From Marsupella aquatica (taxonomy: Eukaryota; Plantae; Marchantiophyta), in assembly GCA_973895155.1 (NCBI GenBank), contig OZ316897.1:15189375-15253374 (forward strand): 64,000 nt of DNA, in the 5' to 3' direction. The notes beneath the pieces are model-generated. The model ran no database searches. It worked only from the letters and a program-made list of their open reading frames with translations, and was not told the origin of the DNA. Within the stretch, counting starts at the first letter, position 1, and every line of letters begins with the position of its first letter. This document shows positions 3,630-54,700 of the stretch, piece by piece. The position numbers were made by a program, and so were the translations under genes.

Positions 3630-3907
3630 GAATGATCTCACAGTCCGCATGGTGTAACGGTCCGTCCTCGACAACAATTCTTGCCACACGCGTAGGTCAT
3701 AGATAAGCAAACTTTGGGGAAGCTAATTAAACCTTTCCTTGATGTTGTTGACAGAGGGTTTTGTTGATCTAATTTGCACACCTCAATCGCTGGAGACAGC
3801 TAACGCCCACTCTGTACGTGTAGACAAACACCTCCGAAATGGCCCAGATTGAAGAAAGTCCAGCGTGGGCCAGGTCGTTCAGACGTAAGAACAATCGAAC
3901 TACTGAC

Positions 3908-3970
3908 GTATCTATCTGAAACAACCTTGTATCTATCTGAAACAACCTTGTATCTATCTGAAACAACCTT
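3908..3970 (+). repeat. Perfect 21-bp tandem repeat x3
   Basis: GTATCTATCTGAAACAACCTT x3, followed by TCAGATAG; the last unit folds as CTATCTGAAA/TTTCAGATAG. Confidence 0.95.
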
Positions 3971-5257
3971 TCAGATAGTGTTCTATGTGGTATCATAAGT
4001 GTCAGTAAGTACGTGGGCCCTCGGACCAAGATTTACTTTCAAAGGACCAACTGGCCAGTCCACAAGACGGTCGGAAACATCAGCATCGATATCTCAGCTA
4101 CAAGCGGTCAGTCCCATCCAATTGACATATGTCACTTCTCAGGACTGGAATACTACTACTGCAGTCGCGTACACGGCAGTAGAATCATTCAAACGGATAA
4201 TATACCAAGTAGAATCCTCCAAAAGATTTTTAGCAGTCCATTTTCTTTATTGACATGCATGATCGATTGCAATAAGTACACTTTTGGCCCGAGTTAAGGC
4301 TGTCCCGTAGGAAATGCTTCTGGACGGCCCGACCATAGCCCCTACATAGATCCTGGAGAAGAAATCTGAAACAGCAGTAAAAATCTATATATTGGAAGAT
4401 CCGAAGAAATTCTCGAAACGTAGAACAACCTATTGGACATCTGAAATTTGAAGGCGTGAGTGCGTCTTCACACTCAAACCATCAAAAGTGGATACCCTCA
4501 ACTGGAAAAATTTAACCAGATCATTATCTAGCAGGCATGTTAAGGACAGCAACTCAATAGCAGAGCCGTCTGAGCATTCTCTGTCGTACACTGGTCTATA
4601 GATAAATAGTCGACAGCTGCATCAAACCGGAATACCAAAACTGAGGATGATTCCCAAGGACAGGGCGAGAACCTCAAGGAGGAAAGGGTTGCCTACTCCG
4701 TCGAAAACTATCCAAGCTCCATTGACACCATCAAAACTAATACTAGCAGGAAGTCTTCCAGCAGCGATCATCAAGGTATCTAGTTTCTGTACGAAAAGAG
4801 AAAGCTAGCTGCCGGCCATCTTTCAGACATGTAAGCGAATTTCGCAGAAAGGCAGAGAGAGAGTTTGACCTTCTCGGAGCTCTACACTGGTCGACCTCCG
4901 CATGCTTCTCTTGATCACTACTATGCCCAACCTAGCTGGTTCAGTTGTATTCTCCATATGCGGACCGACACGTAGGGTGCATATAAAAGAGTCACCTCAC
5001 ACCCCGAGGGCAAGCCGCCGGAGACCTAAAAGGGCACTGGTCCGCGTAGACCTCACTGATTACCTGAATATGGCGCGACAGAATTTCTGGAAGGTTTGAT
5101 ATCTCTCGATGCGTCCAATGCCGAGAGAGCACAAATTACGTCCTAGTCCCGTCACAGAGAAACCGACCAATCTCTTTCAATGACTGCACTTTTCCGAGGT
5201 ATGTCTTTCAGACAGAGATCCAAAAGTAATGTTTCTGTTCGTCGTACGCTGATGTAG

Positions 5258-5349
5258 AGATGGTTGCTTGAAAGTGGGGAGACTTGGGCTGGTGTATTCT
5301 TCGCAAAGAAAATGCCAGTCCAAGTCACTCCACCATCGTCCAGACATCT
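5258..5349 (+). ncRNA. A-family stem-loop (pre-miRNA-like) with compensatory changes
   Basis: GTGGGGAGACTTGGGCTGGTGT pairs with ATGCCAGTCCAAGTCACTCCAC. Against consensus, TT>GA in the 5' arm is matched by AA>TC in the 3' arm, and TTAG/CTAA becomes TTGG/CCAA. Confidence 0.72.
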
Positions 5350-10679: not shown

Positions 10680-12650
10680 TGTTTTATGTGACTTTATTCA
10701 TAATTATAATTTTTATATTAACTTAGAAACCAAGAATTAGTTTAATTGTTAGATCCTTAAAATCAGTGCCAAGCATGCCCTTTGTAAAGTGAAGTTTTGT
10801 GATTTTAAATACTATGTTATTTAAAATGAAATATTAACTTATATATTTATAGTCTTGTAATTTTAAATATTATATCATTTTAAAATAAAATACTAATTTA
10901 TATATTTATTATTAAATTAGAAATAAAAAAATTTTAAATATTATATTATTTTAAATGAAATATTAACTTGTATTTTTATGGTCTTATAATTTTAAATATT
11001 ATATCATTTCAAATAAAATATTAATTTATATATTTATGATTAAAAATGGAGTAATTTTAAATACTATGTTATTTCAAATAAAATATTAACTTGTATATTT
11101 ATGATATGAATGAAAGAGTCTTCACATTCACATCTTTCCAATATAAGATAGATGTAGTCTCAGGTAAAATAATTAGATCAAATTAATTTAAATGTTTAAA
11201 TCATTAATTTGTATAATTTTTTTTATAAAATATTTTTAAAAATTATTTATCTAAATTATTATTTTAATAAATCTTAACAATATTCCATAAATTTTAAAAA
11301 TTTATTAGTTTAAATTTTTCTCAAATATTAAAATGTTAAATATTGTTTTAAAATTTTTTTTATCTATTATTAAATATACATATAAAATTACATAATCTAA
11401 ATACAAATTTAAAATATATTTTATTTATTAATAATAATTAAATTTTATAATTTTATAATTTCATAAATATATAATTTTTTGTGTATTTTAATTACTATAT
11501 ATTTATCCATATTATGTTTATTTAATTTAATTTATTATTTAAATAATAAAATTTAACATCATAAATCAAAATATTAAAATAATAAAATTATACAAAAATT
11601 ATAAATATTTAATTTTCTCAAATAAACATATTATTATAAAATATTATATATATAATCATTTGAAAATAAAAAGAATTCAATATTTATTTTATAATGATAA
11701 TTTTATTTTTAAAAATTTATTAAATTTTAATAATAATATTTGTATTTATGTTTTAAATAAAAATTCATTTTTTAATATTATTAATTTAATTTAATTTAAA
11801 ATTTTAATTTATGTTTTTTATAATGATATAAAAATATTAATTAATAAAATATTAATTAAAACTTATTAGAAAAATTACATAATTTTTAATTATATAAAAA
11901 TTATAAATCATAATTAATCAATCTAATATATATTTATCATTTATATAAATATAATTTAAATAAATATCAATTAATTAATATATATATATATTATATTTTA
12001 AAAATTTATTATATAATATATTAAATTTTTTTTGTAAATTAAAATATTTATAATTTAATTAAAATATTTTATTTAATTTATTATCATTTAAATTATATTA
12101 CATAAAATTTAATAATATATAATAATTTATTTATTTTAATAATGAAATATATATAATTAAAATTATTTAAATATAATTTATTTTGATTAGAGTTAACAAA
12201 ATTAAAGTTAGAATTAACAAAAAATTTGTAAAATAAAATAATAAATTTAAAATTATATTTAATTTTTAATTTATTTATAATTATATTATTAAATGTTAAA
12301 AAAATTGTATTTTTAATTTATAAATTTTATAATCATTTTATTTAAAAAAAATTTGAAAATTATTAATTATATTAATAAATTTTTATTTTATTTATTATTT
12401 AATTTAAATTTAAATTATGAAACCTCATTATATAGAAATCTTATTATGATATGTAATTTTTTTAGATTCTAAATTCTCTAAAATATTTTTTTAATTATTA
12501 CTATAATATTTTAAATTTTAAATGAAATAAATATAAATATTTTTATGAATTTTAAAATTATATTTTTTAAGAAAAATTGTTAAATTTTTCTATAATAGCA
12601 ATAAAATAACAAAAAAAAAATATTGTAATTGATGTATTATTTTTGTGGAA
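10680..12650. other. Extremely AT-rich island (probable hypermutated TE relic) with ~60-70-bp sub-repeats at ~10800-11105
   Basis: Almost no G/C for ~2 kb with fairly abrupt borders; the ATTTTAAATA(C/T)TAT..ATTT..AA(T/A)..AAATATTAA motif repeats about five times at the left end. Confidence 0.75.
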
Positions 12651-15700: not shown

Positions 15701-16036
15701 TGTTAGGGTTTTGACTCAACCTTGGCTACTACTTTAACTAGAGTAAGTTAATCGGAGGCAACATTAGTTGACTAGACTCCTCATGAAGAGATAACCCTCT
15801 TTGTATCCCATGAAGAGAGAGCACTTAGTTGAGAACTTTGAGAGAGAGAGAGAGAGAGCTTGGACTATGGAGCTCTGGTGATATGCACTTTTTGTGTTCA
15901 TAGTGAAGCTATTGCCTGATGCGGCCGTGGACGTAGCCTTGACGGGGTGAACCACGTATCTTTGTGTCGGTGTACTCGAGTGTTGTATATATGAGTGATG
16001 ATTATGAGATGTCATGCTGTCCATTTTGATCCTACA
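15701..16036 (+). mobile_element. Solo LTR, copia-like family B
   Basis: TGTTAGGG...GATCCTACA with perfect 5-bp TSD CATCA (15696-15700, 16037-16041); GTGGACGTAGCC..GGTGAACCACGTATCT motif shared with family A; homologous to 49532-49830. Confidence 0.88.
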
Positions 16037-17224: not shown

Positions 17225-17568
17225 TGTTAGATATTGCTCTAGTCTTGTGACTCATGAGCTAACCACAGTTAGTCTAACTCTGGTTAGGACTTAGCTAATG
17301 TTAACGGTAGTGCTGGTGTGCATATAGCTAGGGCTGATGCTAGACCCTGGTGGAACTTAGGCTCATTGTTACGGAGCTAGTTGAGAGATAGGGAGAGCTT
17401 GTGCTGTGGATGCTTGGTATGGCCGGTCGGCCTAGAGTGCAGTAAAGCTCTTGTGTGTTCCCGTGGACGTAGCCTCATGTGGAGGTGAACCACGTATCTC
17501 TCTGTGTCGACTATTGTGCGTTGGATAGTTCATGGGCTTGCCGTTGCGAATGTCGTCTATGCTCAACA
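17225..17568 (+). mobile_element. Solo LTR (344 bp) of the copia family at 19287-24307, opposite orientation
   Basis: TGTTAG...TCAACA; about 10 differences from the reverse complement of 19287-19630; flanks AAAAC/CAAAC (TSD with one mismatch). Confidence 0.92.
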
Positions 17569-19286: not shown

Positions 19287-19630
19287 TGTTGAGCATAGAC
19301 GACATTCGTAACGGCAAGCCCATGAACCATCCAACGCACAATAGTCGACACAGAGAGATACGTGGTTCACCTCCACATGAGGCTACGTCCACGGGAACAC
19401 ACAAGAGCTTTCCTGCACTCTAGGCCGACCGGCCATACCAAGCATCCACAGCACAAGCTCTCCCTATCTCTCAACTAGCTCCGTAACAATGAGCCTAAGT
19501 TCCACCAGGGTCTGGCATCAGCCCTGGCTATATGCACAATAGCACTACCGCTAACATTAGCTAAGTCCTAACCCGAGTTAGACTAACTGTGGTTAGCTCA
19601 AGAGTCACAAGACTAGAGCAATATCTAACA
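19287..19630 (-). repeat. 3' LTR (344 bp, complete)
   Basis: Matches the solo LTR 17225-17568 end to end; adjacent to the polypurine tract. Confidence 0.95.
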
Positions 19631-19837
19631 AACTCCCCCTTGACTCTTGTCTTGGGGACTGGACTAAATACAACCATATGGAATCCTCAGCGAGAAGTTC
19701 TAGACAATCACCAAACCAGGTCTCCCCCTAAAAACCACAAGGGTTAACTAAGGGTTAACTAGAACTAAGTCGTAGCCAAACAGGAATGAGTAATCCATAT
19801 ACAAATAGTCACACATTGCTAAATAACTCTACTTGCA

Positions 19838-24047: not shown

Positions 24048-24307
24048 CTCCACATGAGGCTACGTCCACGGGAACACACAAGAGCTTTACTGCACTCTAG
24101 GCCGACCGGCCATACCAAGCATCCACAGCACAAGCTCTCCCTATCTCTCAACTAGCTCCGTAACAATGAGCCTAAGTTCCACCAGGGTCTAGCATCAGCC
24201 CTGGCTATATGCACAATAGCACTACCGCTAACATTAGCTAAGTCCTAACCCGAGTTAGACTAACTGTGGTTAGCTCAAGAGTCACAAGACTAGAGCAATA
24301 TCTAACA
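24048..24307 (-). repeat. 5' LTR lacking its last 84 bp and adjacent PBS
   Basis: Identity to the 3' LTR stops abruptly at CATGTGGAG (minus strand); no TGGTATCAGAGC PBS next to the junction. Confidence 0.92.
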
Positions 24308-25560
24308 AGATTGAGGCTAATGGGGTCCATGCTTTGGTGGAAGAGTGGCTAATGGTGTCATACAAATGTAGCCAATATTAGCCAAAAGTGGCAAAAGTTT
24401 TTTGGGGAGGTGGAATTTGGCTAAAATTCACACTTAAAAGATACGCCGTAGTAGACACTGGAGAGGTAGCTTGACCATAGCAGGCAGTTTAGGGCCAGGG
24501 TCAGACAGGGTGTCACTTAAGTTTCTGGCAAGCCACATTGCATCAACTGTGCGCATATGTTGGACCACATAAAATTTGTCAATACTGTGATCATATGCAG
24601 ATTTGCAAGCAGCCTAGTATGGCATATAGGCTAATATAATAGTCAAGCATGTGTTTGGCAAGCAGTCAGGGTTAACCAACTTAATTAGGTCTGTGTTGCA
24701 CGTGCCATTGTTTAAAAAAATGTGGCCCTTACAACTCTTGCATTGTCGGCAAAAAGGTGATAGACAAATCTGCACACAATCGGCTAAGGCAAGTTTGTTT
24801 GTTTTGGTTTATATGAGATTGCAAGGTTGGGCGGGTAAGGGCCGCAAATGTTGCAGCCCTTGCCCTTGAAAGTGCACTTGTTTAGCCGTGAGGACTGGCT
24901 CGATCAAGAGGGGGGGCGAGTTAGGAAAGTCGCGGTCAGTCCCACGGTTCCACCTGATGACACATAGGGCTTATAACATCGCGGACCCTCGTGCACGCAA
25001 GACAACTCTGAAAATCTATTAATATTCTTCATTGTAGATTTTTCCAACACACTAAGACATAAACTGTATACATACGTGATTATTTGTTATAGTCTACTTT
25101 CGGGCTTGGATTGACTCCGCTTGGGAAGAGAGAGGTCTATTTTATGGGGAGGTTGGCTATATCAGTCCTTCTAAGAACAAAAAGCGGCTACCGACTACTT
25201 TCGTGGATTGACTCGATTGGAAAAGAAAGTCTATTATATGGGGAAGAGGGCTAGATATCGAACTGTCAAAGAACAAAAAGCGACAAACAGAAGACGGGAT
25301 CCTAAAGGAAGGAATATAGGTAGAGTACAATCTGCTGGCTGGTAGGGGGTACATGGTACATGTGCAGCTTGCGCTATATAATTATATAGCAGGCACATAA
25401 AGATATGGTGGGCAGGTACATACAGATATGATGACATACCTACATTTGGATTTGGCCGAATCTAAATTCGACGCATGGGGGTGGGGAAATATGTTTTGAT
25501 GCTCCTATATGACAACCAACTTTTGACTAAGTTGACCCCAAACCAAGGCTTATTTACAAA

Positions 25561-26138
25561 CAGCTTTTTATCAACCTGTCCCCCTAACTTGTTGAAATTT
25601 GTAAGCTGTCCCCCAAACCATTTTATTTACTTCCCTGCCCCCCATTCCGTATATGGAATAGTATTCTCTCATTTTGGGGTTCTGGATGCCAGGTGGCAAG
25701 GCATCATTGGCCTGGACTTTTTTTCCTTTGTAAAAACGGGGCTCAATGCTGCGTTCTCCTGTGTACTCGGGCTGCGATGGGAGGTCAGGGCTTCAGGAGG
25801 TCTTAGGGGGAGCGGAGGTCCGGAATTCACGAGGGCTTAGGGGGAGCGGAGGTTTGTGGGGGGGGGGGGGCGTTTGGCCTCCTCCCGGGTCTGAAGCAAA
25901 GCCCGTTCCATCAAAACGGGCCGCGGCGGGGAGGGGGCAAGCAGCAGTCGGGCAGGGAGAAGCAGTACTTGGCCAGAAACATCCGGGCCAATGACGCCTT
26001 GCCACCTGGCATCCGGAACCCCAAAGATGAGAAAATACTATTCCGTATACGGAATGGGGGGCAGGGAAGTAAATAAAATCATTTGGGGGATAGCTTAGGA
26101 ATTTCAACAAGTTAGGGGGACAGGTTGATAAAAAGCTG
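25561..26138. mobile_element. Mutator-like (MULE) MITE with ~155-bp TIRs
   Basis: 25561-~25716 is the reverse complement of ~25982-26138; perfect 10-bp TSD TATTTACAAA (25551-25560, 26139-26148); GC-rich non-coding core. Confidence 0.93.
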
Positions 26139-28233
26139 TATTTACAAAAGTGACTCCATTCTAATCTAATTACTACACTGCCCCCCTAATGGTATATTAC
26201 TTCAGTTACCAGTAGTCCTGCCCAGGAGTGGAACACATTGGCTCTCCTTCATCCCAGTTGGGTTAGATTAACCTAATATCACGCGCTAGCACCCCATCCC
26301 CACCATTGCTATGGCAGCAGCGTCGCAGCCCCAAGACGGAGAGACCCGCCCGGAGCCTGACCCTAATGCAATCAACTTTTCCCTTGGGAAAAAAGCAAGC
26401 TTCTGGCGAGTACATATTACATATGTGGACACATCTTTAATTAAATTTGGCTAGTATTACATGTATACATACATCTTTAATATGAAGAAGAAATGGACAC
26501 TCTGGCTTGATTTCTTCAGGACGCTGGCAGCGGGTCCAATATTGTTTGCCAGTCCGCAAAATTCTCTCTCGCCCTCTCTACATTCAAACCAAATCTGCCC
26601 ATATAACCGGGCCCATCTTGGCTATTGTCAATAGTGCCCAAGGTGAACATTATAGTGTCCATAGAAAGTGGAGTAAACATTCATTCATAGTGCAACTGAA
26701 CAAAACAATGAGAGCTATGAATACACGGTAGCTCTTATTTACCTTATTTAGATACTGTAGTTGTGATTCAACACTCGCTTGCCGTACATCCTACTAAAAC
26801 TGCTATAACATAAAGCGGGATATAAAGGCTACATAATCATTCCGGCAATCTTCTTAGGTCCAAGGAGAGATTCTGGACTCTCTGGTTTAGGTTGAGCATG
26901 ATCCAAAGTTTAGACGAGATCCAAAAGAACAGTTGTTTAGTACACAAACAATCGATAAACATGTCTGCAGGTCATGTTTTCTTACTTTTCCCAAATTCCG
27001 TCCCGATCCTTGTAGCACAATCATGTGACTTCATCTGAATCTTGAAAGATGAACGGTGAATGTGTCATCATCAGCGTTTTTCTATTTACAAAATTTCGCC
27101 AAATTCTTACATAAAAAAGGAAAAAAGAACGGAAAATTGGCAACAGATAGCCGAAATTCCTGTCAAAAAACGCTGGTCACCACCATCTTAACAGCACGTT
27201 ACTCACGTTTCCCACTTGTACATCTGTCGTGACTTGTTAAATTGATTCAGCATCATTGATCAGGCAATTGAATGACAAAAGAGTCTTCTGATTACTTTTG
27301 GCACCATCAAAGTTTGAGACTGAACTTTGCACACTGACAAAAGTACGAGAAAATGGACGGATCGGAACTCTTCAACCATAACTCTCAATCATGCTGTTTC
27401 ACTATTTGACAAATACCTGATGACATCAACTTAACAGCACAGCGTGTGATAAGGCAGCTTTGAATGGTGGGACCAATGGGCCACAATGACTGAAGTCTGA
27501 TGCAAAATGACGCTACATTTCTTCTAAGTAGGTTTTCTCACCTGGTTCTTTGATAGCCCTGACATCATTTTGCCTTTTGGTTATTTTGTTTGTTATCGTC
27601 AGCCGCGCGAGGTGGCGTGCCGCTCGCGTTTAGGATCTCTTTCAATTACTGTACAATTATAATTGAAACCAGCTATTAAGAGGCTCACCCAGTCACACTT
27701 TCACCGGCCTATTTGTGAAACCTCGAGTCTGGAAATAGCCTAGTCGGTCGCCTGCACGTCCCATTAAATGCTGAGGGTCTTAACAATGCCTTCGTTGAAT
27801 CCTTTACACTGATCACTGATGTCCGCCTCCTGAAACGAAGATATTATTCGGTTGCCAGGTGATTGCAGTGCAAGCTGAGCTGCCGTGTACTTCGCCGGAC
27901 ACCATCCCTTGGCCAGGACTACGGATTGCTACGCCGATTTGAGTTTCGTTCGGTCCATCATCGCTTTCTCACAGTCATGAATTCTACTATGTGACATTGA
28001 ATTCATGTCATTGCATGACACCGATAGATACGGCGAAAGATACCTAGCGTTCTGCATTACTTTATGGTAATCATTATATTGCAACTATAAGTATCTAGAT
28101 GAATTAGGTAGGTTAGCAAAGAGCTTCTGAGCCTACTGCAGTTATTTAAATAAGATGATTGGGTTTATTATAATATGGGGTGACTCAACATATGGTGCGT
28201 TGTGATATTTTCTATCATATATACACTCAGTGG

Positions 28234-28241: not shown

Positions 28242-28926
28242 AAATAATTAGATTTATCAAGATATGAATGACGTCATACACCTATATTGTGACATTTTGA
28301 TGTGCAAGCTGCTGTTGGTATAGGTACTCGATTGTTGGGGCAGAAAATCTCGGAAGACAAGTACCATTTATTAAAGTACTACAGTATTTAGATACAAATG
28401 TGGCGATGGCATCACCCAAAAATCTATTGCAATTCACGTATAGAATAATATGTCATGATATGAAGTAGAACCAATTTCTTGCCGGTGCTATAATTAAGCA
28501 GCGACCTTCTAGTTCTATTCGTATTTGACCCGGGAATATGTCAACCTCGATCAGATCTGCGATCATAATGATGACAAGCGACTGCTTATTAAGGATGGTT
28601 GAAGTCGTAGTGATAGTAAGCATGGCAGGAGAGTGGCCCAGGGGATCGAAACATTACACATTGGGACTACGACTCCCTTCCGACCAACCCCAACATATAT
28701 ATTTGGACAGCAATGATATTGGAGGACGTTTCTATGTGTTACTATCAACCCGATCTGACAAACGGGACGAGAGGAACGGTAAGAAATTGAAGTCCTGCCA
28801 GGTAGCTAGGCTAGTTTATAGAACGATTCGAACGCTGAGCGCAGAATAAGACCTACGAAAACCCTGTCTACTGCTGGTTGAAGCGTAAGCGAATTCATCT
28901 GCTGTGAATGGAGTTCAGTACATAAT

Positions 28927-29018
28927 AGACAGCTGGACGAAAGTGGAGACTGCTAGCCTGGTATTATCTTCAGAAAGAAAAGCCCGATCGAAGAAACTCC
29001 TCCAGAGTCCAAATATCT
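28927..29018 (+). ncRNA. A-family stem-loop
   Basis: Lower stem TGGAC/GTCCA is a compensatory version of consensus TGCAC/GTGCA; upper stem GGAG../..AAGAAACTCC is degenerate. Confidence 0.55.
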
Positions 29019-29727
29019 GTATGAGCTGTAGAAAGGTAGCTTCCGGGGAAGCATCCTGGACGTCCACCTTTGACAGACCAAAAAGCTCAAACCTCATAGA
29101 AGCCCTACTCTAAATCAGAGCTTCAATTGATGAACTTTCTATGGCGTTACCTATGGGAGATTCTGCACAAAAGTGGAGCTTAAGCCAAGATTGGCATTTC
29201 GTTTGAAAAGAATTGCTCTGTCCAATCTAAAATAGTTTACCCGTTGCAACTCTGAAGAATCTAGATTGTAAGATCATTCAGTACGTGTCTGATCGTGGAA
29301 CTGCAACATTTCCTTCTCACAAAGTAAGGATGACTGATATTGATCCGGCCAAATATTCAGTTACTCTAAGTGAAATCTAGTTCGTTACCCTCTAGGGGAA
29401 AGAATACCGTGCCTCTAGGTTGCGAGATCACCCAGATGCATGTCTATTTGATGGTGGAGCTAGCTGGTAACTGTGAAAGATCGAGATCAACCATTGTCCT
29501 CTAGAACTATGAGATCAACCTCTAGAACTATGAGATCACAGAACTACGATATCACTTATTTTTCGATGGTGAAGTGGTACTTTAGATTGGGTGAGACATT
29601 TCTTTCGAGAAGAAACACCAGATCCTGCAAATTCTTGTGCAAAATATGCGAATATAATGGGTCAAGTTGGGCTTTAATTTATTTCATTGCATGCTTATGA
29701 GCGCATCGAAGCCAACTGAACAAACAG

Positions 29728-29788
29728 AGATGGAGGTTCTTGGTCGATGTTTGCTATTGAAAGAACCTCCACCATCGCTCAGATATCT
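29728..29788 (+). ncRNA. A-family stem-loop (short)
   Basis: TGGAGGTTCTT/AAGAACCTCCA perfect 11 bp; T>G and A>C compensatory against consensus; ends in CAGATATCT. Confidence 0.6.
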
Positions 29789-30827
29789 GGGACGTCGACG
29801 ATCGATGTCCTAGACGATCTAACAGCGATACAGGTGTACGTACAGTACTTACAAGAGAAGTGGAGTCACACGAGTCAATCGTTGAGAGGTAATATTTTCG
29901 AACTGTGATGGGCTCAGACGTCACGAGTATTTGTCAAGTCAGGTGGAAGAGATAGCTTAAATTCGTCCCTTCGGCTGATGGTGTTAGAGGCATAGAATAG
30001 AGCTGTGTGAAATTGGAGCTTCGTGGGTAGTTTGCAAACGTCTCCCTCACCCTCAGGACAAGTGCTACAATTATGAATATAGTGGTCAGAAGGGTACTTC
30101 AAGCGCAAGAAAATGGCCTTCTCATTACGCTGCTTTGCAAGGACGTACGTAGTCTAATTTTCTTGGGATAGGAAAACCAGTTCAAGAAATCCATCAAATT
30201 GCGGAAGTTTGCATTCTAGGTTGATGTCACAGCCTAGCTCGAAAATTTTCGTCTTCAGGGCTAGTATCCGTGATCCTCCACTGTTGTGGAAAGAACTTGA
30301 GACCCAGACATTCAGCCTAAGTTCACGTTGTTAATGAGAATTGTTTCGAATTTATTAAGCATCAAAGAAGCTCCTGGAGAAGTCCGAAAATGTTTAGCTC
30401 AAGCGATCTCGAGGTCCATCGATCGTCAAGCTGGCGTTTCTTCAGAATGAAAACGCAGTCCAATTCAAGAAACTTCACTAACGCGCAGATGTCTGGGACA
30501 ATCGATTTCGAGTTATAGAGTATCACTTTCACGATTCATCCTGGTAATCTACCTATTGAAACTGAATCTCGGGCACCGCCATTTTCGATTACTCTTTTAA
30601 TGGTAAACCTGATTGAGGATCTGTTGATCTGGTTGCTATTAAACAGCACCACCAATCCAGTGCTTGTATGCAACAGAAATTGGGCCAGAACGCAGTACTA
30701 CGGTAGAGCTGCTAACTGTCGAAGAAACTTTGGTAATATCACCATACCACTCCAAAAGTTCTTGGGCGAGATCCCGAACCAATTCTCGTCGTAGCCAATG
30801 CCCTGTCTACAATTCTTCATGAATAGA

Positions 30828-30919
30828 AGACAGCTGTTCGGAAGTGGGGATTCTTACACTGGTATTTCCTTGGAAAAGAAAAGCCCAGTCGAAGAAACTC
30901 CACTACCGTGCAGACGTCT
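30828..30919 (+). ncRNA. A-family stem-loop
   Basis: AGACAGCTGTTCGGAAGTGGGGATTCTTACACTGG - 22 nt - CCAGTCGAAGAAACTCCACTACCGTGCAGACGTCT. Confidence 0.68.
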
Positions 30920-31196
30920 GAATAATTATGCAGCGGCAGAAAGGTAGCTTTCCCTCTCGAAGAAATGTGTCTCACCAACGAGAAGTTGATGAAATTTAAG
31001 GCCAGTGAAGGTCTCCCAGTCTAATGTTGTGGATGAACGACCTTCACAAACATTCAGACTTCCAAAGCGTGCACAATGGTCATCGAACGCAAATTGGAAG
31101 TTGAAGAAGTCGGCAATCTGACCATTCTCGGTGGATGCTATCCTGATTTCATGAAAATCCAAATTTGAAAATTGAGAATGACGGCCTTGGATTACA

Positions 31197-31295
31197 AGAT
31201 AACTGCACGAAAGTGGATCTTCTTAGACTGCTATTTTCTTCAGAAAGTTGAGAGAAGAGCCCAGTCTAAGAAACTCCACCGCCGTAGAGATATCT
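31197..31295 (+). ncRNA. A-family stem-loop
   Basis: AGATAACTGCACGAAAGTGGATCTTCTTAGACTGC - 29 nt - CCAGTCTAAGAAACTCCACCGCCGTAGAGATATCT. Confidence 0.7.
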
Positions 31296-31470
31296 AAACT
31301 TATGATTAATTAGGACGGAATTGCATGCTGCCTACTAACTGTGAAACTTCTGAGACTAATTTCAGGGCGATGAACTTACTCGCCCGACATCATTCGATAA
31401 TCTCTTCTTGCCATAATATCGAATTTCAGGACGGAGGTTTTATTTCAGGACGAGTCATCACTAAACTAAA

Positions 31471-31575
31471 AGATAGCTGCACGAAAGTGGAGTTTCTTAA
31501 ACTGGTATTTTCCTTGGACTAGAGAGAATTCAAGAAAAGCCCAGTCTAAGAAACTCCACTGCCGTACAGATATCT
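31471..31575 (+). ncRNA. A-family stem-loop (closest to consensus)
   Basis: AGATAGCTGCACGAAAGTGGAGTTTCTTAAACTGG - 35 nt - CCAGTCTAAGAAACTCCACTGCCGTACAGATATCT. Confidence 0.72.
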
Positions 31576-31732
31576 AAACTTATGATCTAAACGGGAACTG
31601 TCTCGTATGCAACCTCGGAAATGAATTTGAGTCGTTGAAGTTTGCGCCATCCGACATCTTCGTAGCATCTTTTCATTTCATGAATCATTCCATCAAATCC
31701 GGATTTTAACGACTATGGTAGTCATCACTAGA

Positions 31733-31829
31733 AAATAGCTGCACGAAAGTGGAGTTTCTTAAACTGGTATTTTCCTCTGACTCGACAGAAAAGCCCAGTC
31801 TAAGAAACTCCACTGCCATAAAGATATCT
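31733..31829 (+). ncRNA. A-family stem-loop
   Basis: AAATAGCTGCACGAAAGTGGAGTTTCTTAAACTGG - 27 nt - CCAGTCTAAGAAACTCCACTGCCATAAAGATATCT. Confidence 0.7.
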
Positions 31830-32262
31830 GGGTGAACTTGCAGCCGCAGATATGTGCCTTTTCTTTCGAGGAGTAAGTTGCCTACGAGTGACAACTTGTA
31901 GGTCCCCGACTCTATAGCGTGCCCAATATTGTCCGTGGATCATCTTGGAATTCATAAACATTTCGATGTAGTGAGCATGAATCTAGTCACGGAATACAAG
32001 GTAGTTGCATGAAGGTGGACCTTCTCAAACTGGTACTTTCTTTGGAATTGAAAGAAAAACCCATTCTATTTAAAAAACTTCACCCTCGTGACCGCCCTCA
32101 TGCATAGATGATCTCAGTTCAGAAATAAATTCTTTTGCAGTGAATCCGTCGTAGTCTGAAGGGGATGCCGTTGAAATTCCCAAAATCGCGAGGATGATGG
32201 TGTGATTTCACTTGTGAAGTTCGAACTTCATAGCTCGAGAACAGTCAATGATCATGCATGGG

Positions 32263-32360
32263 AAATAGCTGCTCGAAAGTGGAAGCTCTTAGGCTGGTAT
32301 TTTCTTCACAACTGTAAAAAAAAGCCCAGTCTAAGAAACTCCACTATCGTACAGATATCT
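32263..32360 (+). ncRNA. A-family stem-loop
   Basis: AAATAGCTGCTCGAAAGTGGAAGCTCTTAGGCTGG - 28 nt - CCAGTCTAAGAAACTCCACTATCGTACAGATATCT. Confidence 0.7.
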
Positions 32361-32780
32361 GGGAGATTCTGAGCCGCTTCAGGAGTTTACGACTTTTTCC
32401 TTCCCATTTGAGAAGGAAACCGAATATCAATGGACCTCTGCAGAGTGAATTGGCTGAACAATGTCGATATATGGATCTCTTGATAGCACGAATCATACTA
32501 GGATACTAAGCAGAAAGGTGAAGGAATATAATATGGCTGTAGGAAGTGGAGATTCTAACACCAGTGTTTTCCCAGTCTAAGAGATGATATCTCCATTCTG
32601 TCCAATTGCTGTGCGAGCATACAAAGTGGTCGAGGACTAAATTTGAAAGCAATGAATCTTCGCAGAATAGTCGGGAGGCAGAGGAAGTTCGCCCGGCCCA
32701 ACGTTACCGATGAGTCATCATTCGATTTCGTGGAAGTTCAAATCTCATAACTCGACTAAGACAGTCGGTCTTGGAGTAGA

Positions 32781-32870
32781 ACACAGATGCGCGAAAATGG
32801 AGCTTCCTCACGTGGTATTCCCTTTTAAAAGAAAGCCCAGTGCGAGAAACTCCATGTTCGTGCAGGTACT
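32781..32870 (+). ncRNA. A-family stem-loop (diverged)
   Basis: ATGGAG/CTCCAT is a compensatory version of GTGGAG/CTCCAC; lower stem TGCGCGAA/TTCGTGCA. Confidence 0.6.
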
Positions 32871-33382
32871 TAGACTGAGTCATTTCATCTTCCACAGACA
32901 CAGTTGCTTCATATGTAGTCGTCCACACGAAACATTCAGAGCAATGAACCCGCTAGAGAAGCCCTCGTTGCCTGACATTCTTGTTGAATGTTTGAACGTA
33001 AATTGAAAGTGAGGTAAGCGTCGAAGATGTTCCCGTTAAAAACAAATAATTGAAGTTCTTTTTGAACCATCAGGAAAGGACATTCCAGAAAAGAATGTCA
33101 GTACTGGTCTGAGCAGTCTGAATTAATGGGAATCCACCTTCTGCTGGAAGAGCCGCTTCACTGCAGAGACGACACCGATGGAGTTCGCCTCAAGGCCGGG
33201 CATTGTCGCTGAATGAATCCAACAATTGAAGTTAAATGACAAGGCGAAGAAATGATGAGGCTTCCCGAAGGTTCGAAAATACGACAATACTGTGATCAAA
33301 GCCCTAGCTTATTAACCCCTGGCCAGAATAGAATGTCACACGGGGTGAGTCCTGCTTGAAATGTTGAGCAGCTTCGCGTAGA

Positions 33383-33478
33383 AGAGACTTGTACGAAAAC
33401 GGAGCTCCCCGGGCTGATATTTTCTCCCGAAAGAAAAGTCCAGTCCAAGAAACTCCACTCTCATACACTCGTTGCCTC
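33383..33478 (+). ncRNA. A-family stem-loop (diverged 5' arm, conserved 3' arm)
   Basis: GTACGAAAACGGAGCTCCCCGGGCTGATATTTTC ... GAAAAGTCCAGTCCAAGAAACTCCACTCTCATAC. Confidence 0.55.
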
Positions 33479-33795
33479 CTACTTTGCAGCTCTCCAAACT
33501 TGGCTGTCACTTAAAAAGTTTTCGAGGGCCTACGACGGGCTATAGAGGTTCCTAGCCTGAGTGTGGCCCTCAAAGCTCTGGCACATGCCAGCAACGTATA
33601 ATGCCGGAGATGGCCAGGCCGAGGAAACGTTCAATTCAACCTCTAGTTGCAAAACTCCAGATTGCATTCCGAGTGATTGAATCCTTCCAATTCAACGTGG
33701 CCTGGCCGGACATAGAATTGAAATGTCATGAAAATGTCGGATTGGTCATGTGCCACTCGAGGCAAGTACGTTAGCTAGCCCCTCAGCCTCGGTCT

Positions 33796-34128
33796 CTAGG
33801 TTCTGCGACACAGCGGTACAGTCACGTCATTCTTCTTCAATGGCACCATCAAAACGCGATGATTTTGACGCAACTGATATATAGACAGGTCACGCTGGCA
33901 CCCACTGAAGTCGCAGCCATTATACATGAAAAGCGTGACACGTACATGATTGACTGTGAAGGCGTTCTGATCTGCAAGCTCGTCTGCATTGCTACTTCCT
34001 TCCCCAGGGGAGGCGTTCTGATCTGCAAGCTCTGCTCTTCTGCATTCAGACGTTCCCTCCTGGACCGCATAGAGAGGCCGATGTAGGAAGAGAGTGGACG
34101 AACTTAGATTCTGCGATGACTTTGCCAT
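33796..34128 (-). CDS. Possible small orphan ORF or first exon (MAKSSQNL...), function unknown
   Basis: TATAAATATA on - strand at 34215-34224, ATG about 90 bp downstream; internal repeat ELADQNA x2; no recognisable domain. Confidence 0.2.
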   Translation of the reverse strand: MAKSSQNLSSSTLFLHRPLYAVQEGTSECRRAELADQNASPGEGSSNADELADQNAFTVNHVRVTLFMYNGCDFSGCQRDLSIYQLRQNHRVLMVPLKKNDVTVPLCRRT

Positions 34129-34359: not shown

Positions 34360-36548
34360 GGGCTGGCGAGAACATAATGTTTAAAAAGGTTCCATGCACA
34401 GAAAAAATAATTAAAACATTAAAACAACTAAAATGCAAGAGTTCAATGCACACCACAAATAAACAATTTCTCCAAGTAGAATAAGTAAATAGCGTTCTAT
34501 GCACCCAAAATGGTGAGGATATCCGTGTTCCATTTGCACACTTATAGAAGAGAGACTAGATGTGTACCACTGGATCACCACACTATTTTTCTTTCTAGGT
34601 TTTTGTGGTTTGCATTTGTCATCGTGTTTTGAGTTTAGCGTTTGGCCTCTCCCAACCTCTTTTGCTTTTTTTTCGTTGTACTTTCTTCACAATCTTTTTT
34701 AGTAAATTGTTCCTTTTTCCACCTAGAAACTGAGCCAAGTGGATTATGTAATATTGAGTAAGAAAAGGGCTTTCTTTGCATACGAGTTGGTCATAATGCT
34801 CTCCAGGACTGCACAAACCCTATTGACGCTGATCCACCAAGGATGAGAAGATCACTAGCTTCTCAACATCAATGGCTACCACGTTTCACCAACAAGCATT
34901 CAACTCGGGTTCTATAATCCAATGTCCAACACATCCTTTTCAACTGCAACAACAATAACATTTTCTGTTGACAGTGTAAGGCCAAAGAGTACTCCATCTA
35001 AAATATCCCTGCAATACAGATTCGGACCAGCAGTGGAGATACCCATAGCACTTACTAGCACTTCCAGCACCAAAATCACCGAAAAAAATACTTAGTGTAA
35101 ACGCCATTTGTTGCTTACCAACCAACGAAGTCGATTGCTTCTCCTTTCAAATTCAAAATGAAAGGAAATTCCATGTTCTTTGGCATTGAAGTATGGTTGC
35201 ATGGCATATCTCCATAAATTATTATCTTGCTGATTTTGAGACAAGCTGGGCAGCAGAAGCCCCACCGTCTCCTTCAACTTAAATCACAAGATTAGCCATT
35301 TTTTCTATTCGGAAAATTGCCAAAATGAAGGTCACTCACCAAACACAAATCTATGGCTAAGGTTGATATAAAGCAGATCGAGGAAGATCTACATGCTATC
35401 CATGTTTTCAGGAGAATCAGCAGGTGATAATTACATTGTTGACAGTAAGTAGCACAGAAGGTTCCATGTGGGGAGAGAAAATTATAGAATAAGAGACAAT
35501 GGCTGTGCACCACAAGCTAGAAAGAGGTGCATGCAGTTTCATGAGCGGAATTCAATAAAAGAAAACTGAGGAGCAAGAAAATATTTGTAATCTTCTGTCG
35601 TCTTGTAATAAAAACGTATTTCAATTTTCAAAACAAAAAAAAAACGCGTGATCCTTGCCAAGCGTCATACGTTCGCCACTTGCACACTAAAGTAAAAAGG
35701 ATTTGCTTGTCCCATATAGAATGATTGTGCACCCACTTTTGCGCTATTTCTGGAAACAGGGATTTACTAGAAACTGTTCTACAAAGTACAATGGAGTAAC
35801 AGCGAAAGAGGTCAATGGAGTAGCGAAAGGTCCCAAGACAATACAACACTAAACTCAAAAGAAGAGGGCAAATAGAAAATCCCAGGTTAAGTGAGCAGCT
35901 GCTCTAGAGCTTTCAACATTGAAACTGACAGGTGGAAACACCACAGTTTGGCCCTTGCTGAGTCTTGTGTTAGGCAAAAATATTCATTGAAAAGTAGGGT
36001 TGAGGCAAAACCAGAAAAAGATTATAGGGTCAGTACTTTGCATAGGGCATTTGATCAAAGTTCCCTGTACGGATGATCCCTCAAAAGTCTATATTGTAGA
36101 AGTTCCCCATACTTTCTATAGATTTTCCCAAGGCAGGGTCAACACTCCTTCCTACCGTAGTCATAAAGGCACCCACCAAAAGAGCACTGATGATTCCTCA
36201 AAAGTTTATACGGGAGCAAGCTCCCATACTTTCCATAGATTTTCCCAAGGCAGGGTCAAAACTACTTCCTACCGTAGTCATAAGGGCACCCACCAAAAGA
36301 GCACTACCGTAGTGCCAGGTTCGTCCCGGTATGCCACTACATAACACGAAGTCCAAATATTATTCTCGCGGTTTTGTTTTCTCGTTTCAAAAATGATGTA
36401 TACAACAAACCCCTAGATATGTGCTTTACATCTAGATGCTTAGAAAATTTTCAAAAAATAATTCTTACAAGGGTCACACAAGCATTCTAGAATATTTTGT
36501 CACTATGGTCCAAGATTTTCATAAATTTTATTTTCTTGCTGCTAGCCC
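34360..36548 (-). mobile_element. Degenerate PIF/Harbinger-like DNA transposon relic
   Basis: Imperfect inverted ends GGGCTGGCGAGAACATAATGTTTA / TAAATTTTATTTTCTTGCTGCTAGCCC. Broken minus-strand reading at ~34780-35520 (QPYFNAKEHG, TAGPNL, DIG, WISVNRVCAVLE) loosely resembles DDE_Tnp_4 motif spacing. No clean TSD. Confidence 0.4.
36072..36305. repeat. Tandem duplication, ~117-bp unit x2
   Basis: GATGAT(C/T)CCTCAAAAGT...CACCCACCAAAAGAGCACT at 36072 and 36189. Confidence 0.93.
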
Positions 36549-49531: not shown

Positions 49532-49830
49532 TATAAGATTGAAATAGACAACATGACGTCTCCAAATCATCACTCGAGTACACTGACACAAAGATACATG
49601 GTTCACCCATATGGGTTACGTCCACCGCCACACCAAAGGCCTCATTCACAATTGGGATGATATGCAAAACAATGAGATATTCTCTCTAATTTACACAAAG
49701 TTCTCAACTAAGTGCTCTCTCTCCATGGGATACAAAGAGAGTTATCCATTCATGAGAGTCTAGTCAAGTAATGTTAACTTCGGTTAATTTACTCTAGTTA
49801 ACCTAGCCGAGGTTGAGTCAAACCCTAAAA
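49532..49830 (-). mobile_element. Diverged lone LTR, family B
   Basis: Reverse complement aligns along 15701-16036 (TTCTCAACTAAGTGCTCTCT, GGGATACAAAGAG, GTCTAGTCAA, GGTTGAGTCAAACCCTAA); ends decayed, no 5-bp TSD. Confidence 0.85.
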
Positions 49831-50049: not shown

Positions 50050-51798
50050 AGGTTTTTATTGGATTTAGTGAAATACTTTTAACATGATTTCCGACCGAAC
50101 GAGAACTATTTCCGCAAACGAGAAATTTTTCCATGATTCATGCTCTCCAAAGATATATGAATGGTCTAATCTAGACATCCATATCCATTTTTTGAGCAAA
50201 GTCCGATACTTGTATGGGACTCCGAATTTGAACCATGAAAGTTCCGACCAAATTCCAATTCTTCCAGTTTTTGGTTATTTATTGTAACTTCTTTACATCA
50301 CAGTCGATAAGAAGTTACCACACAGTTTGTGAAACTACCTCACAGTTACCTCCGCAATAGACCATAGTAACCACACACATGCATAGTCAACACGCTATTG
50401 TCGCAACCGCAATGTGCAGTCCAATAAAATTATCACGAAAACTCTGGACGACAAAAATACTTGTCGACAATACCAACATCAGATAAATTTATCGCCTAAA
50501 TTCCAAACTACAAATATCCATATGAAGAAAATATATTTTGCAATACCAACATGAGATAAATTTATTGCCTAAATTCCAAAACTGCAAACATCCATATGAA
50601 AAAAAATTATTTTGCAATACCAACATAAGATAAATTTATCTCTTAAATTCCAGAAATGCAAATATCCATATGAAGAAAATCAATTTTGCAATACCAACAT
50701 GAGATAAATTTTGCCAAGATCCACATCTAAGAGTCAAATTGGATATCGAATGAAATATATCCTTCTTTGCTATTTTATCATTTAGCAAGATTGCGACATC
50801 ATAGAGTAAGATGAGTCACAAAACAACACTCAAGAATAATACTAGTTAGTTGGGTGCGATAAGTTTATCGCACTTTGCATTCACCTAGAATGACTCGACT
50901 CTATCACAAACCAAATTTAGATTAGAATGAAGCGACTCCAATAAATTTATAGAATGAAGACTTTGTGTGGATCCAGCGCAGGAATGCGCACTTCGATAAT
51001 TTTATCGGATGTTATCTAAAAATCATCTTCAATCCATAAAAGGAATGAAGCCTCCGATAAATTTATTGAAGTCTCAAATAATCTTCAATCCGACACAGGA
51101 ATGAAGACTCCGATAAATTTATCGAACTTTAAGAAAATTACCCTGAATCCAATCTATGAATGCGCACTCTGATAATTTTATCGGATGTTCAGATTCAAAC
51201 ATATTCAATGCAGGAGAGGATGCAGAATGTGATAAATTTATTGTAGTCCGCTCGGATTAGGACATTAACACCAAATGATAAGTAAACCTTACATAGATGA
51301 TACTCGAACTGGAATGGAAGTTCCAATAAACTTATCGGGTTTTCTTGAGAAAGAATCAAATCTCATGGGATGAATGTAAGACTTTATAGGATTTAAGTAT
51401 TCATTATGAGAGAAGTGTTATTTTCTCTAGAGAAAATAAACCTTTTATGGGCAGCCTGCTCCTCTTTATGTATAGGGAATGCTCTAACCATGGTTATTTT
51501 TCCTCATTAACCATGGTTAAGTTTGCACACTAAATCGGATTAGTGCGTGGTCGACCCTCGATTACGTGGTTGGGGCCAAGTTACTTGCAGTCCCGCTTGC
51601 AGTTTGGACTATTTTACGTTCCAAATGTTAAACTCGATGCACGTATCGCTCCCTGCATTCCCACGGTGATGCAATGTAGGCAACTGATGCTTTTTCAATT
51701 TTGCGGCCATTTTATCGGAGTTTGCATTGCCTTAGAAAAAAAACAGAATTGGGCTAAACGAGAAGTGTATCACATTTCTTGGACGGTCCAAAATTGTG
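50050..51798. mobile_element. Diverged relative of the 18065-19209 TIR element with ~72-bp and ~58-60-bp internal repeats
   Basis: Collinear shared blocks: TTTACATCA..GAAGTTACC, CGTATCGCTC, right end AAACGAGAAG..TCACA.TTCT....GGTCC..; repeats CAATACCAACAT.AGATAAATTTAT (50470-50710) and GAATGAAG..TCCGATAAATTTATC (50920-51340). Left TIR not found. Confidence 0.6.
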
Positions 51799-53071
51799 TT
51801 TTTTAAATTTTGTTGAAGAACATTAGGGTTATTTTAATCCAATTTTGAGAATTATAAGAATCATAGGATTTTTTAACAAAATTGGGAATATTCTTGGAAT
51901 ATTCCATTAACTTAGGGGTTAACAACTCCTAAACTCCTATTGACTTTAGTTTTAGGATGTTTAATCCCCCAAAACTTTGCGCGTGATATGAGACACCCCT
52001 TGGATTGAGGCCCCCAAGAATTGAGAATCAATCACTTACTTTGTTTTCGTGAAGAAACTAATGAAATAGTCATTCTGTACTGCTCATTTTATTGTTATGA
52101 GAACTCTCAATCCGTTATGCACAAAAATTGATCCAGAACAACGGGTGCCGACCTTAGCTTATAGCAAGGTCACTCGGGTCTGGGAGGCTCTATCCACTAA
52201 CCTACTTACTAACAATTGTTGAGTTTGTGGCAAGATAGAGAATGGTCTTGGGATCGGAGATCAAGACGGGTTACTTACCAATGGGTTCCAGGTTGCAGAT
52301 GCAAACAGTAGGAGCCGTTGAGCGACGGTCGTATTGAGGAACAGGCGTGGCTTTGTATGGGAATTGCCACAGGCAATGATAGAGAGATATAATTTGTATT
52401 GAAAACAAAAACACCCAAATTTATCTACCTTATGGCAAAATAAATCTTATTGGACCCTTGACTGTAAATCCACTTTTACGAAGTAAGTGCCACCGAACTG
52501 CCAATGGTCATTGGAATCTCACTCTAGGTAATGCAATCTTCTATTGGAATTCCAATCACTTCATTCTGAACCCGGCGCACCAGATTCGCAAAAGATATAT
52601 AGATTGAAACCAGTTTATTAGCGTTATCCGCAGATTGAATATTTAACATACAAATTGCACAGTTGCTCAAGCGCGTCTCGGGATTTTTTTTATCGATCCA
52701 AGTCAGATTTATTTATAGGTTCTATACCCACTGAATCGGCAAGATTCTATAATCCCCCAGTTGATAAACCTCCCAAATCTTTTCGACAACAAGTTGCTTG
52801 CTTGCAGAGTTCCATGTGGGCATTCAAGCACCATGAGTACTTAGCTGGAGGTACTGGGTTTGGTGATGGCAAGGTCCACCATTGTGTGTTGAGAGCTACA
52901 ACACAGGCCTGTTATTCAGAATTAAGCCTTTGGACCATGACTTTGGGGGCAAGTGTACAGCTTGGGTTGGATTGACAACGAGCATGATTGGTACTATCCC
53001 TCTGTTTGTGAGCAAAGCTCAGGCATCCCTGAGGCTGGTGAGTGAAATTCTGCTAAACCTAATTATTCGTA

Positions 53072-54700
53072 CACTCAGTTAAGCAAAGATGGCTGGTTCA
53101 TTTTTGGGTGAAAACCACGCACCAGAGACACTAACAGGCCTTTAAAGTTTTCATTTGACAAAGGCTTAATTGAAGACTAAACCAAATTATTTGTAAACTC
53201 AGTTAAGCAAAGATGGCTGGTTCATTTTTGGGTTAAGGCCATGCACCAGAAATACTAACAGGCCTTCAAAGTTTGCACTTGACAAAGGCTTTACTGAAGT
53301 TTTTGCCCACCACAATTGATTCATCAAAAAAAATTATTACATTCGACCTTGGTTAATTAACCATGGTCAAAATGTGGGTTAGGGTGCACAACTCATACAG
53401 TCTCCAACACATGCAAAAGATACTTGTGAGTTTAGTGGTGATACCCTTCAAAAAGTTATTAGAATATGTTTTGTCCAAACATATTGAGGCATCAAACCAA
53501 GCATTAGTAAACAGTGGCATGCATCAAACTGATTTTGTCTTTTTGAGTGTGTTTTTTTAAGAAGATTCACATTTGGCAGCAGCAAATTGTCGCTTCGATT
53601 CTAACGTAGTGGTGGCAGAAGAGATGCTACTTTGATGAGTGTGCCACTTTGATGAGGGTGCCATAGTACTTTTTGACTTTTTTTTTCTTTTTAAGCCAGT
53701 GTGGCCAATGTCAGCCTTTGTGAACTAGAAGATACTTTGAATGTACCTTATCTTCCTGAATTATTTTTTGACCGTCAGATCTCCCTAGATTTAAGAATGA
53801 CCGTTAGATTCTTGCAAATGGGGTTTATAACTAGGTGAGAAAATGGCTAATTGGATACAAGACAATCTAGATGGCTGATGGGATACAAGACAATCTAGAT
53901 GGCTGATGGGATACAAGACAATCTTCCTGTGTTAATTCTGATTGGCCCACATTGACCCTGACAGGATTCCCCTAAAGCTCAATTGTGCACACAAACAGTA
54001 TATTGTGGAATGAGACATTAAAGCAGACACATGAAGAGTATATTGTGGAATGAGACATTAAAGCAGACACTTGGAGAGATATCACTAGGAGTTCTCACAG
54101 CTGGGTCATTAATGAAAGTTACCGATCTGTGGTATATCCCATAACCCTGGTTATGGGACAATGAAAGTTACCGATCTGTGGTATATCCCATAACCCTGGT
54201 TATGGGACCCAGCTATAGAATTTTAAAATTGGGTGAGGTTGCTTTGACCCGCCCCACAAGGCAAGTGTTATAGCCTCACCTATCTCATAGCATATATTCT
54301 CTCTTTTTTCATTCTTGATCAGCCATCGTCTCAAATCAGCAGTGATCACGTGCCTTCAGCCATGGCTTTCCGGAGTTTCGGAGTCCTGGATTTCCAGATT
54401 TCCGGATTCGCGCCTAAAGTTGCGGGAAAGTTAAGGGTTAAGTGTTGAGCTTTCCGTAGGGTAGTCAAAAATTGACTCCCATAACTTTTACAGGATAGAG
54501 TTCTCATAATAAAGTTGAGTTATGGGAAAGCCTTCTCTTGTTTTAAGCCCAAGGTTTGAGAGGCACTACTAGGCAAGCACCATTATCAAACTTCACAAGA
54601 AGGTAACCCATATACCAACCCTCTCTTACACAGGTAGGACAATTCGAACATACCCTATACCAACCCCCTGTTACGCGGGTAGGACAATTCGAACAAACCC
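53072..54700. repeat. Cluster of short tandem duplications upstream of the alpha-galactosidase gene
   Basis: ~125-bp x2 (53073-53300), 28-bp x2.5 (53853-53924), 40-bp x2 (53997-54070), 49-bp x2 (54111-54208, each with palindrome TCCCATAACC-CT-GGTTATGGGA), ~45-bp x2 (54607-54695). Confidence 0.9.

Follow-up and report, generated by a model that had tools for sequence, protein, structure and literature searches.

INTRODUCTION

Tandem clusters of homologous MIRNA genes are known in plants, such as those of MIR395 and MIR2118 in rice, and large arrays of microRNA (miRNA) genes are known in animals, such as zebrafish mir-430, Xenopus mir-427, and primate C19MC. Plant precursors that are processed base to loop are cut by DCL1 about 15–17 nt up the stem from its base. 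Plant polycistronic miRNA precursors have also been described (PMC2812943). In Marchantia polymorpha, which is the best-studied liverwort to date, a single one of 23 characterized MIR transcription units was reported to be polycistronic, and its two hairpins (MIR390 and MIR11676) are unrelated to each other; by contrast, 25% of miRNAs are polycistronic in Physcomitrium (PMC9291395). Here, we analyzed a 64,000-nt stretch of the genome of another liverwort, Marsupella aquatica (GenBank assembly GCA_973895155.1, contig OZ316897.1, positions 15,189,375 to 15,253,374 of the forward strand), which is called the window below, and to which all positions refer. A preliminary description of this DNA, made from its sequence alone, had proposed that an array of related hairpins at 28925–33800 is transcribed from the plus strand and processed into many small RNAs.

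The data showed that the region from 28,920 to 33,481 contains a one-directional row of 16 units with a single fold-back of ~105 nt in each, of which nine are intact or nearly so, and seven are truncated or decayed. The array is probably read from the minus strand, opposite to the first proposal. The best-supported reading, which we favor with moderate confidence, is that it is a lineage-specific MIRNA-like tandem cluster of a new family. The nearest known kind of locus is the tandem cluster of homologous plant MIRNA genes, to which the array would add a new family. Similarly to the MIR395- and MIR2118-type clusters of rice, it contains many copies of one hairpin on one strand with short regular spacing, its hairpins are conserved while its spacers are not, and variant mature sequences are predicted within the cluster. 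It differs from the rice clusters in that its family has no match in Rfam or in searchable papers. With its nine intact hairpins and seven decayed ones within 4.6 kb, the array is at the upper end for plant MIRNA clusters. The array shares with the MIR genes of Marchantia polymorpha the liverwort lineage and the single stem–loops of about 100 nt, but it contains 9–16 homologous hairpins, unlike the two-hairpin locus of that species. The animal arrays (mir-430, mir-427, and C19MC) resemble it in that a single precursor is repeated in tandem, in dozens of copies, on one strand and with spacers that have diverged, but their hairpins are substrates of animal Drosha and Dicer.

RESULTS

The array consists of diverged tandem copies of one hairpin

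The repetition of the hairpin arms in the window was compared with chance expectation. A 13-mer from the arm was found 20 times with at most two mismatches, while 2.6 occurrences were expected, and the 21-mer TGGAGTTTCTTAGACTGGGCT was found nine times with at most three mismatches, while 0 were expected. A covariance model (R1) was made from the nine array copies and then run over the window. The nine copies used to build it scored from 77 to 115 bits, all on the minus strand, and a tenth, truncated one at 29703 scored 28.5 bits. A profile hidden Markov model (nhmmer) extended the array by six relics, at 29163, 29564, 29991, 30147, 30425, and 32525. Hence, the periodic array of one fold-back is far beyond chance, and the 16 units are in agreement with the 12 recognizable copies plus about five weaker ones that had been counted before.

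The hits of the covariance model showed that the hairpins share one strand, and the array has the form of a ~265-bp unit with one ~105-nt hairpin, duplicated head to tail many times. The unit centers are 249–277 bp apart over 31.2–32.8 kb, which is close to the earlier estimate of 251–274 bp for the core, while outside of this range the spacing is less even. The span initially given for the array, 28925–33800, was correct as to its location but slightly generous at its end, as the last copy stops at 33,481. Tandem Repeats Finder (TRF) reported no tandem array at the locus, because the units are too diverged, and the hairpin part alone is still alignable.

Sequence conservation is confined to the hairpins

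To compare the hairpins with the DNA between them, several measures of similarity were used. Self-BLAST showed that the similarity between units is limited to the 100–140 bp of the hairpin, with the exception of the youngest units, 31190, 31464, and 31726, whose spacers still align with 72% identity. In a MAFFT alignment of the hairpins with 80-nt flanks, the pairwise identity was 0.57–0.78 in the stem segments and 0.21–0.33 in the flanks. Because lenient gap penalties gave 0.75 for unrelated DNA, which made that measure of flank identity uninformative, it was replaced by a stricter one, in which matches per base in a global alignment were compared with a threshold of 3 standard deviations (SD) of unrelated window DNA. 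Against a baseline of 0.51 ± 0.03 matches per base for unrelated window DNA, the hairpin pairs had 0.67 matches per base, with 31 of 36 pairs above 3 SD, while the pairs of 110-nt flanks had 0.54 matches per base, with only 2 of 72 above 3 SD. The contrast between stems and spacers, which had been noted in the preliminary description, is thus borne out by the numbers. Since the spacers are at the noise level while the hairpins remain alike, the duplications must be so old that the spacers have reached saturation, and the hairpins were kept.

This pattern is different from that of satellite DNA, whose monomers are alike over their full length, while in this array the ~105-nt hairpin part alone is alignable. 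A satellite without a difference between stems and spacers, which had been named as an alternative at the outset, is therefore at odds with the blank TRF result and with flanks at the noise level. The folds of the spacers are ordinary (−25 to −37 kcal/mol, with z-scores of −2.3 to −2.8, versus z-scores of −5 to −10 for the hairpins of the family), and no conserved promoter-like motif was found to be repeated among the array spacers.

Folding energies and G:U pairs point to the minus strand

To determine the strand from which the hairpins could be read, the copies were folded in both orientations. Eight of the nine main copies were more stable on the minus strand, several of them by about 10 kcal/mol. 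The consensus energy calculated by RNAalifold was −25.7 kcal/mol for the minus strand versus −11.1 kcal/mol for the plus strand. The minus strand folds better because the positions that depart from Watson–Crick pairing are G:U on this strand, while they are C·A on the plus strand. When such positions were counted on the minus strand, G:U exceeded A·C by 54 to 18 alignment cells in the nine main copies, and by 72 to 29 in 13 copies. When each column-state was counted once, which reduces the effect of shared ancestry, the ratio was 25 to 11 (approximate p 0.03). This bias is unlike what is expected of a palindrome maintained at the DNA level, which would not show it. Hence, the folding on both strands, the consensus energy, and the G:U bias all contradict the proposed plus-strand transcript. 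This correction determines the small RNA, and the targets, to search for.

The stem anatomy fits a base-to-loop precursor with a 5′-arm guide candidate

The best copy, 31464, consists from base to loop of 5 bp, a 1 × 1 mismatch, 8 bp, a second 1 × 1 mismatch, and a 20-bp stem. Above this, a small internal loop, which is asymmetric, leads into a conserved distal stem of 8 bp that is closed by a short loop. The copy has 44 bp in total. The anatomy outlined in the preliminary description, with a lower stem of ~13–14 bp and an upper stem of 20 bp, was therefore accurate, while the distal region, which had been regarded as variable, forms a conserved stem of 7–8 bp. In the minus-strand alignment of 11 copies, standard pairs occupy 84% of the cells, versus 44–53% when the partners are slid by 1–3 columns. 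Changes on both sides of a pair were observed in 12 of 39 pairs, versus 7.1 ± 1.9 in shuffled alignments, and only 3 of 500 shuffles reached 12.

The best-conserved 21-nt windows are located on the 5′ arm of the minus strand, and TGGAGTTTCTTAGACTGGGCT is one of the top two. This sequence is identical in four copies and has one to three mismatches in three more. The departures from the consensus in the upper stem are fewer in the 5′ arm than in the 3′ arm (18 versus 36, approximate p 0.02), an asymmetry that would be expected between a guide and its star. In 7 of the 11 copies, 17 nt separate the first paired base from the start of the 21-mer above it, which begins with U, and this distance is 22–24 nt where the stem reaches further. 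A 17-nt lower stem followed by a U-initial 21-mer fits the base-to-loop rule of DCL1, with its lower stem of ~15–17 nt.

The minimal folding free energy index (MFEI) is 0.72–1.27 among the copies that still fold. The rules of Axtell and Meyers from 2018 reportedly require of a plant MIRNA a single fold-back shorter than 300 nt and a duplex that is free of secondary stems, in which at most five positions are mismatched, no more than three of these being in asymmetric bulges. If a 21-nt duplex is assumed, two to five guide positions are unpaired in copies 31190, 31464, 31726, 32256, 32774, 33376, and 3528, the last of which belongs to a second locus described below, while six are unpaired in 30821 and 5251. 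At this predicted position of the duplex, most intact copies have the fold-back and the number of mismatches of a plant MIRNA, while copies 28920 and 31992 do not.

Individual copies range from intact hairpins to relics

The copies are described here in the direction of the minus strand, to which all of them are assigned unless stated otherwise; bit scores are those of the covariance model, and E values those of nhmmer. The first hairpin, at 33376–33481 (78.3 bits), folds with −43.5 kcal/mol on the minus strand versus −24.8 kcal/mol on the plus strand (z-score −5.4 for 33365–33494), and its 23-bp stem relies on 11 G:U pairs. Directly upstream of it in the minus sense, at 33495–33712, there are two unrelated GC-rich fold-backs on the minus strand, which are too weak to be called further precursors (−35.8 and −37.4 kcal/mol, z-scores about −2.3 to −2.5). 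The hairpin at 32774–32878 (79.4 bits) carries a variant guide candidate with three mismatches to the consensus 21-mer, and is followed by a decayed or truncated relic with a poor fold at 32525–32595 (E 0.0015).

The exact consensus 21-mer is present in the hairpins at 32256–32367 (99.5 bits; −44.2 kcal/mol on the minus versus −34.5 kcal/mol on the plus strand), 31726–31836 (110.6 bits; −46.4 versus −36.9 kcal/mol), 31464–31582, and 31190–31302 (103.2 bits). The third of these is the best copy of the array, with its 44-bp stem, a score of 115.3 bits, and energies of −57.1 kcal/mol (z-score −9.9) on the minus strand and −47.4 kcal/mol (z-score −8.9) on the plus strand. Between the first two of them, the hairpin at 31992–32106 (76.8 bits) is partly degenerate and has a 4-nt insertion in the 5′ arm. 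The hairpin at 30821–30926 (99.2 bits; −39.8 kcal/mol on the minus and −41.5 kcal/mol on the plus strand) has one mismatch to the 21-mer.

Further on, the array is more decayed. The relic at 30425–30497 (E 1.5e-8) has a weak fold, with a recognizable 5′ arm and a decayed 3′ arm, and it is followed by a fragment at 30147–30205 (E 0.0019) and by another at 29991–30025 (E 0.026), which contains only the 3′ arm and does not fold into a hairpin. The truncated variant copy at 29703–29795 (28.5 bits) has lost its lower stem and has a shortened upper one. The fragment at 29564–29624 (E 0.0056), which has no hairpin fold, is not assigned to a strand, and its best nhmmer match is on the plus strand. Also in this decayed part, between relic units, a 21-bp sequence is perfectly duplicated in tandem at 29498–29555 and accompanied by a 16-bp variant. 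The relic at 29163–29225 (E 5e-5) folds weakly. The last copy, at 28920–29025 (81.4 bits; −23 to −28 kcal/mol), has kept its sequence, while its upper stem is eroded and 14 of the 21 candidate guide positions are unpaired.

A second locus contains diverged members of the family

Three more diverged family members, two clear and one weak, are located at 3.5–6.1 kb, which is ~23 kb from the main array. The clear members are those at 3528–3636 (56.9 bits; −46.5 kcal/mol on the minus versus −39.7 kcal/mol on the plus strand) and at 5251–5356, for which the score of 61.7 bits was obtained on the minus strand and the more stable fold on the plus strand (−36.0 kcal/mol on the minus versus −47.6 kcal/mol on the plus strand). 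The weak member at 6016–6119 of the minus strand (22.8 bits; E 2e-9) is decayed and has a branched fold. The members of this locus have a variant arm of the GGTGGAGTTCCTTGGACTGG type, and the changes on the opposite side compensate for the variation. Other hairpins at 1960–5470, which had also been pointed out in the preliminary description, are unrelated to the family of the array.

The family has no match among described RNAs

When the whole window was compared with Rfam 15, no family reached its gathering threshold. The hits below threshold were animal mir families, mostly on the minus strand, with at most 29.7 bits versus gathering scores of 55–195; the best of them was mir-1805 (29.7 bits versus a threshold of 64). 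These weak scores reflect only the generic shape of a hairpin. The arm sequences, searched as RNA and DNA stretches of 10–17 nt, had no match in searchable plant papers. Hence, the earlier view that neither arm belongs to a conserved plant miRNA family is in agreement with both searches. A resemblance to miR319, considered for the 3′ arm of one variant (GGGAGCUCC), was dropped, because it is limited to a 9-mer in a single copy, and no MIR159/319 hit was obtained in Rfam at E values up to 10.

A degenerate 20-mer of the conserved arm was found in four metagenome contigs, none of which matched the covariance model, and they were therefore considered chance matches. Exact look-up of 10 open reading frames (ORFs) from or around the array gave no match, and neither did a homology search with two spurious ORFs that span hairpins.

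The array is located in gene-poor DNA next to a separate retrotransposon

The window is gene-poor. It contains a Copia retrotransposon on the minus strand at ~19.4–24.3 kb, with gag, integrase, and reverse transcriptase domains identified by Pfam and with several broken frames. Its long terminal repeats (LTRs), at 19371–19631 and 24048–24308, are 99% identical, and this element is a separate young insertion ~5 kb from the array. The reverse transcriptase is 88% identical to an ENA contig, while its best named matches, from the liverworts Calypogeia, Riccia, and Marchantia, are only 58–63% identical. An inverted copy resembling a solo LTR of this Copia element is present at 17225–17568. The other 25 ORFs tested, of at least 95 amino acids, had no significant match in Pfam; two matches were weak (E 0.03 and 0.07) and below the curated cut-offs.

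No inverted repeats or terminal inverted repeats were found around the array, and no ORF for a transposase, a kinase, or a RING-type protein within about 5 kb on either side of it. These data suggest that, within the window, the array is free-standing rather than cargo of a transposon. The bases directly outside of the stem are semi-conserved and are not target-site duplications. A dispersed miniature inverted-repeat transposable element (MITE) with target-site duplications, or another dispersed transposon, which was the further alternative named at the outset, is not in agreement with what was observed in the window, where the copies are tandem and periodic and no inverted repeats flank them.

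Several other features of the window were noted. The region 10800–12640 is very AT-rich (GC 0.21–0.28), with degenerate internal repeats ~65% alike in both orientations. A 168-bp inverted repeat has its arms at 25549–25716 and 25982–26150, which are 91% alike and separated by about 265 bp; it could represent a fold-back element or the locus of a long hairpin. A 283-bp stretch at 15703–15985 recurs inverted, 34 kb away, at 49568–49828 with 75% identity, and is probably a dispersed repeat. Short local tandem duplications, with units of about 70–120 bp that are 77–92% alike and unrelated to the hairpin family, are present at 36072–36305, 50468–50711, 53053–53299, 61257–61552, and 62940–63159. The ORF at 55530–56000 of the plus strand opens with a stretch resembling a signal peptide and on its own has no match in Pfam. 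We take it to resemble the start of plant alpha-galactosidases, which would make it a possible first exon.

DISCUSSION

The data presented here are best explained by a tandem family of miRNA-like precursor genes, whose copies would have been gained and lost over time. Transcription would proceed on the minus strand from about 33.5–34 kb towards 28.9 kb, giving one or a few long RNA polymerase II transcripts. DCL1 would then cut each hairpin from base to loop, making its first cut about 17 nt up from the stem base, and a duplex of ~21 nt would be released, of which the 5′-arm strand, with the consensus UGGAGUUUCUUAGACUGGGCU, is the predicted guide. Loaded into an AGO1-type protein, this guide would lead to silencing of its targets. 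The copies of the array could yield four identical guides together with several variants. The miRNA-like cluster of the preliminary description is thus consistent with the geometry of the hairpins, with conservation confined to them, and with the compensatory changes, while its origin from the plus strand is not.

Several observations weigh against this explanation. Among the main copies, 30821 folds slightly better on the plus strand, by 1.7 kcal/mol, and copy 5251 of the second locus does so clearly, by 11.6 kcal/mol. The excess of covariation is modest, and the statistics count related copies, which makes the p-values approximate and indicative rather than probabilities. The conserved block of the 5′ arm is ~30 nt, longer than one 21-mer, and the distal stem is conserved even though it is not required by a simple base-to-loop precursor. 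Positions 11–13 of the candidate guide differ between copies, with compensating changes on the opposite side. No orthologue from another species was retrieved with the metagenome pattern, the ORF look-ups, or the ORF homology search.

Other explanations of the array were also considered. It could be an old tandem repeat with a palindromic core, either a degenerate satellite or a hairpin locus for small interfering RNAs (siRNAs), which, if transcribed at all, would give rise to heterogeneous DCL3- or DCL4-type siRNAs marking their own locus rather than to precise miRNAs, with gene conversion between copies and between arms keeping the hairpins alike. The tandem and periodic arrangement in a gene-poor region with transposons is consistent with such an origin, and so are the decay of seven units, a conserved block exceeding one small RNA, and the youngest hairpins, which are near-perfect 44-bp duplexes as in hairpin-siRNA loci. 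However, we consider this origin unlikely, as a homogenized satellite does not have spacers at the noise level next to hairpins that were kept, and conversion at the DNA level predicts neither the G:U bias nor the unequal arms. The excess of G:U over A·C, as well as the difference in conservation between the arms, points to selection on a single-strand RNA product, read from one of the two DNA strands. The hairpins could also remain undiced and function, for example, as a series of protein-binding stem–loops in a long non-coding RNA, or form cruciforms as DNA. Such a role could explain why conservation extends, in the structure and in part of the sequence near the loop, further than a 21-nt product would require. 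The strand asymmetry speaks against a pure DNA role, the 17-nt lower stem, the ~21-nt duplex, and the conserved U-initial arm are specific to Dicer substrates, and no structured-RNA family of Rfam matches, which makes this explanation the least probable of those considered here.

Only slightly more probable, and still very unlikely, is that the hairpin is an internal module or a remnant of a transposon, which would serve the element rather than the host. The presence of the same hairpin at a second locus 23 kb away, and of a Copia element 5 kb away, would fit this idea. On the other hand, no terminal inverted repeats were found around the array, the ~5 kb examined on either side of it contain no ORF of the transposase, kinase, or RING type, self-BLAST finds no repeated flanks, and the Copia element, with its 99% identical LTRs, is a young insertion of its own. 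A broader proposal, to which we assign a low probability, is that liverworts run an undescribed class of amplified guide-RNA arrays, made of several independent loci of this genome with 10–50 tandem copies of one Dicer-type hairpin in each, and that the array is a free-standing member of this class. In such a class, the gain and loss of copies and the compensated changes in the guides may lead to a diversifying repertoire, which could, for example, be directed at transposons or viruses or serve the formation of reproductive phased siRNAs.

If expressed, the MIRNA-like cluster favored here would be a new miRNA-like family of the liverwort lineage, and it would be among the larger homologous MIRNA clusters in any plant. 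Its intact, variant, and decayed copies form a natural series in which to study the birth, the compensated diversification, and the death of plant miRNA genes.

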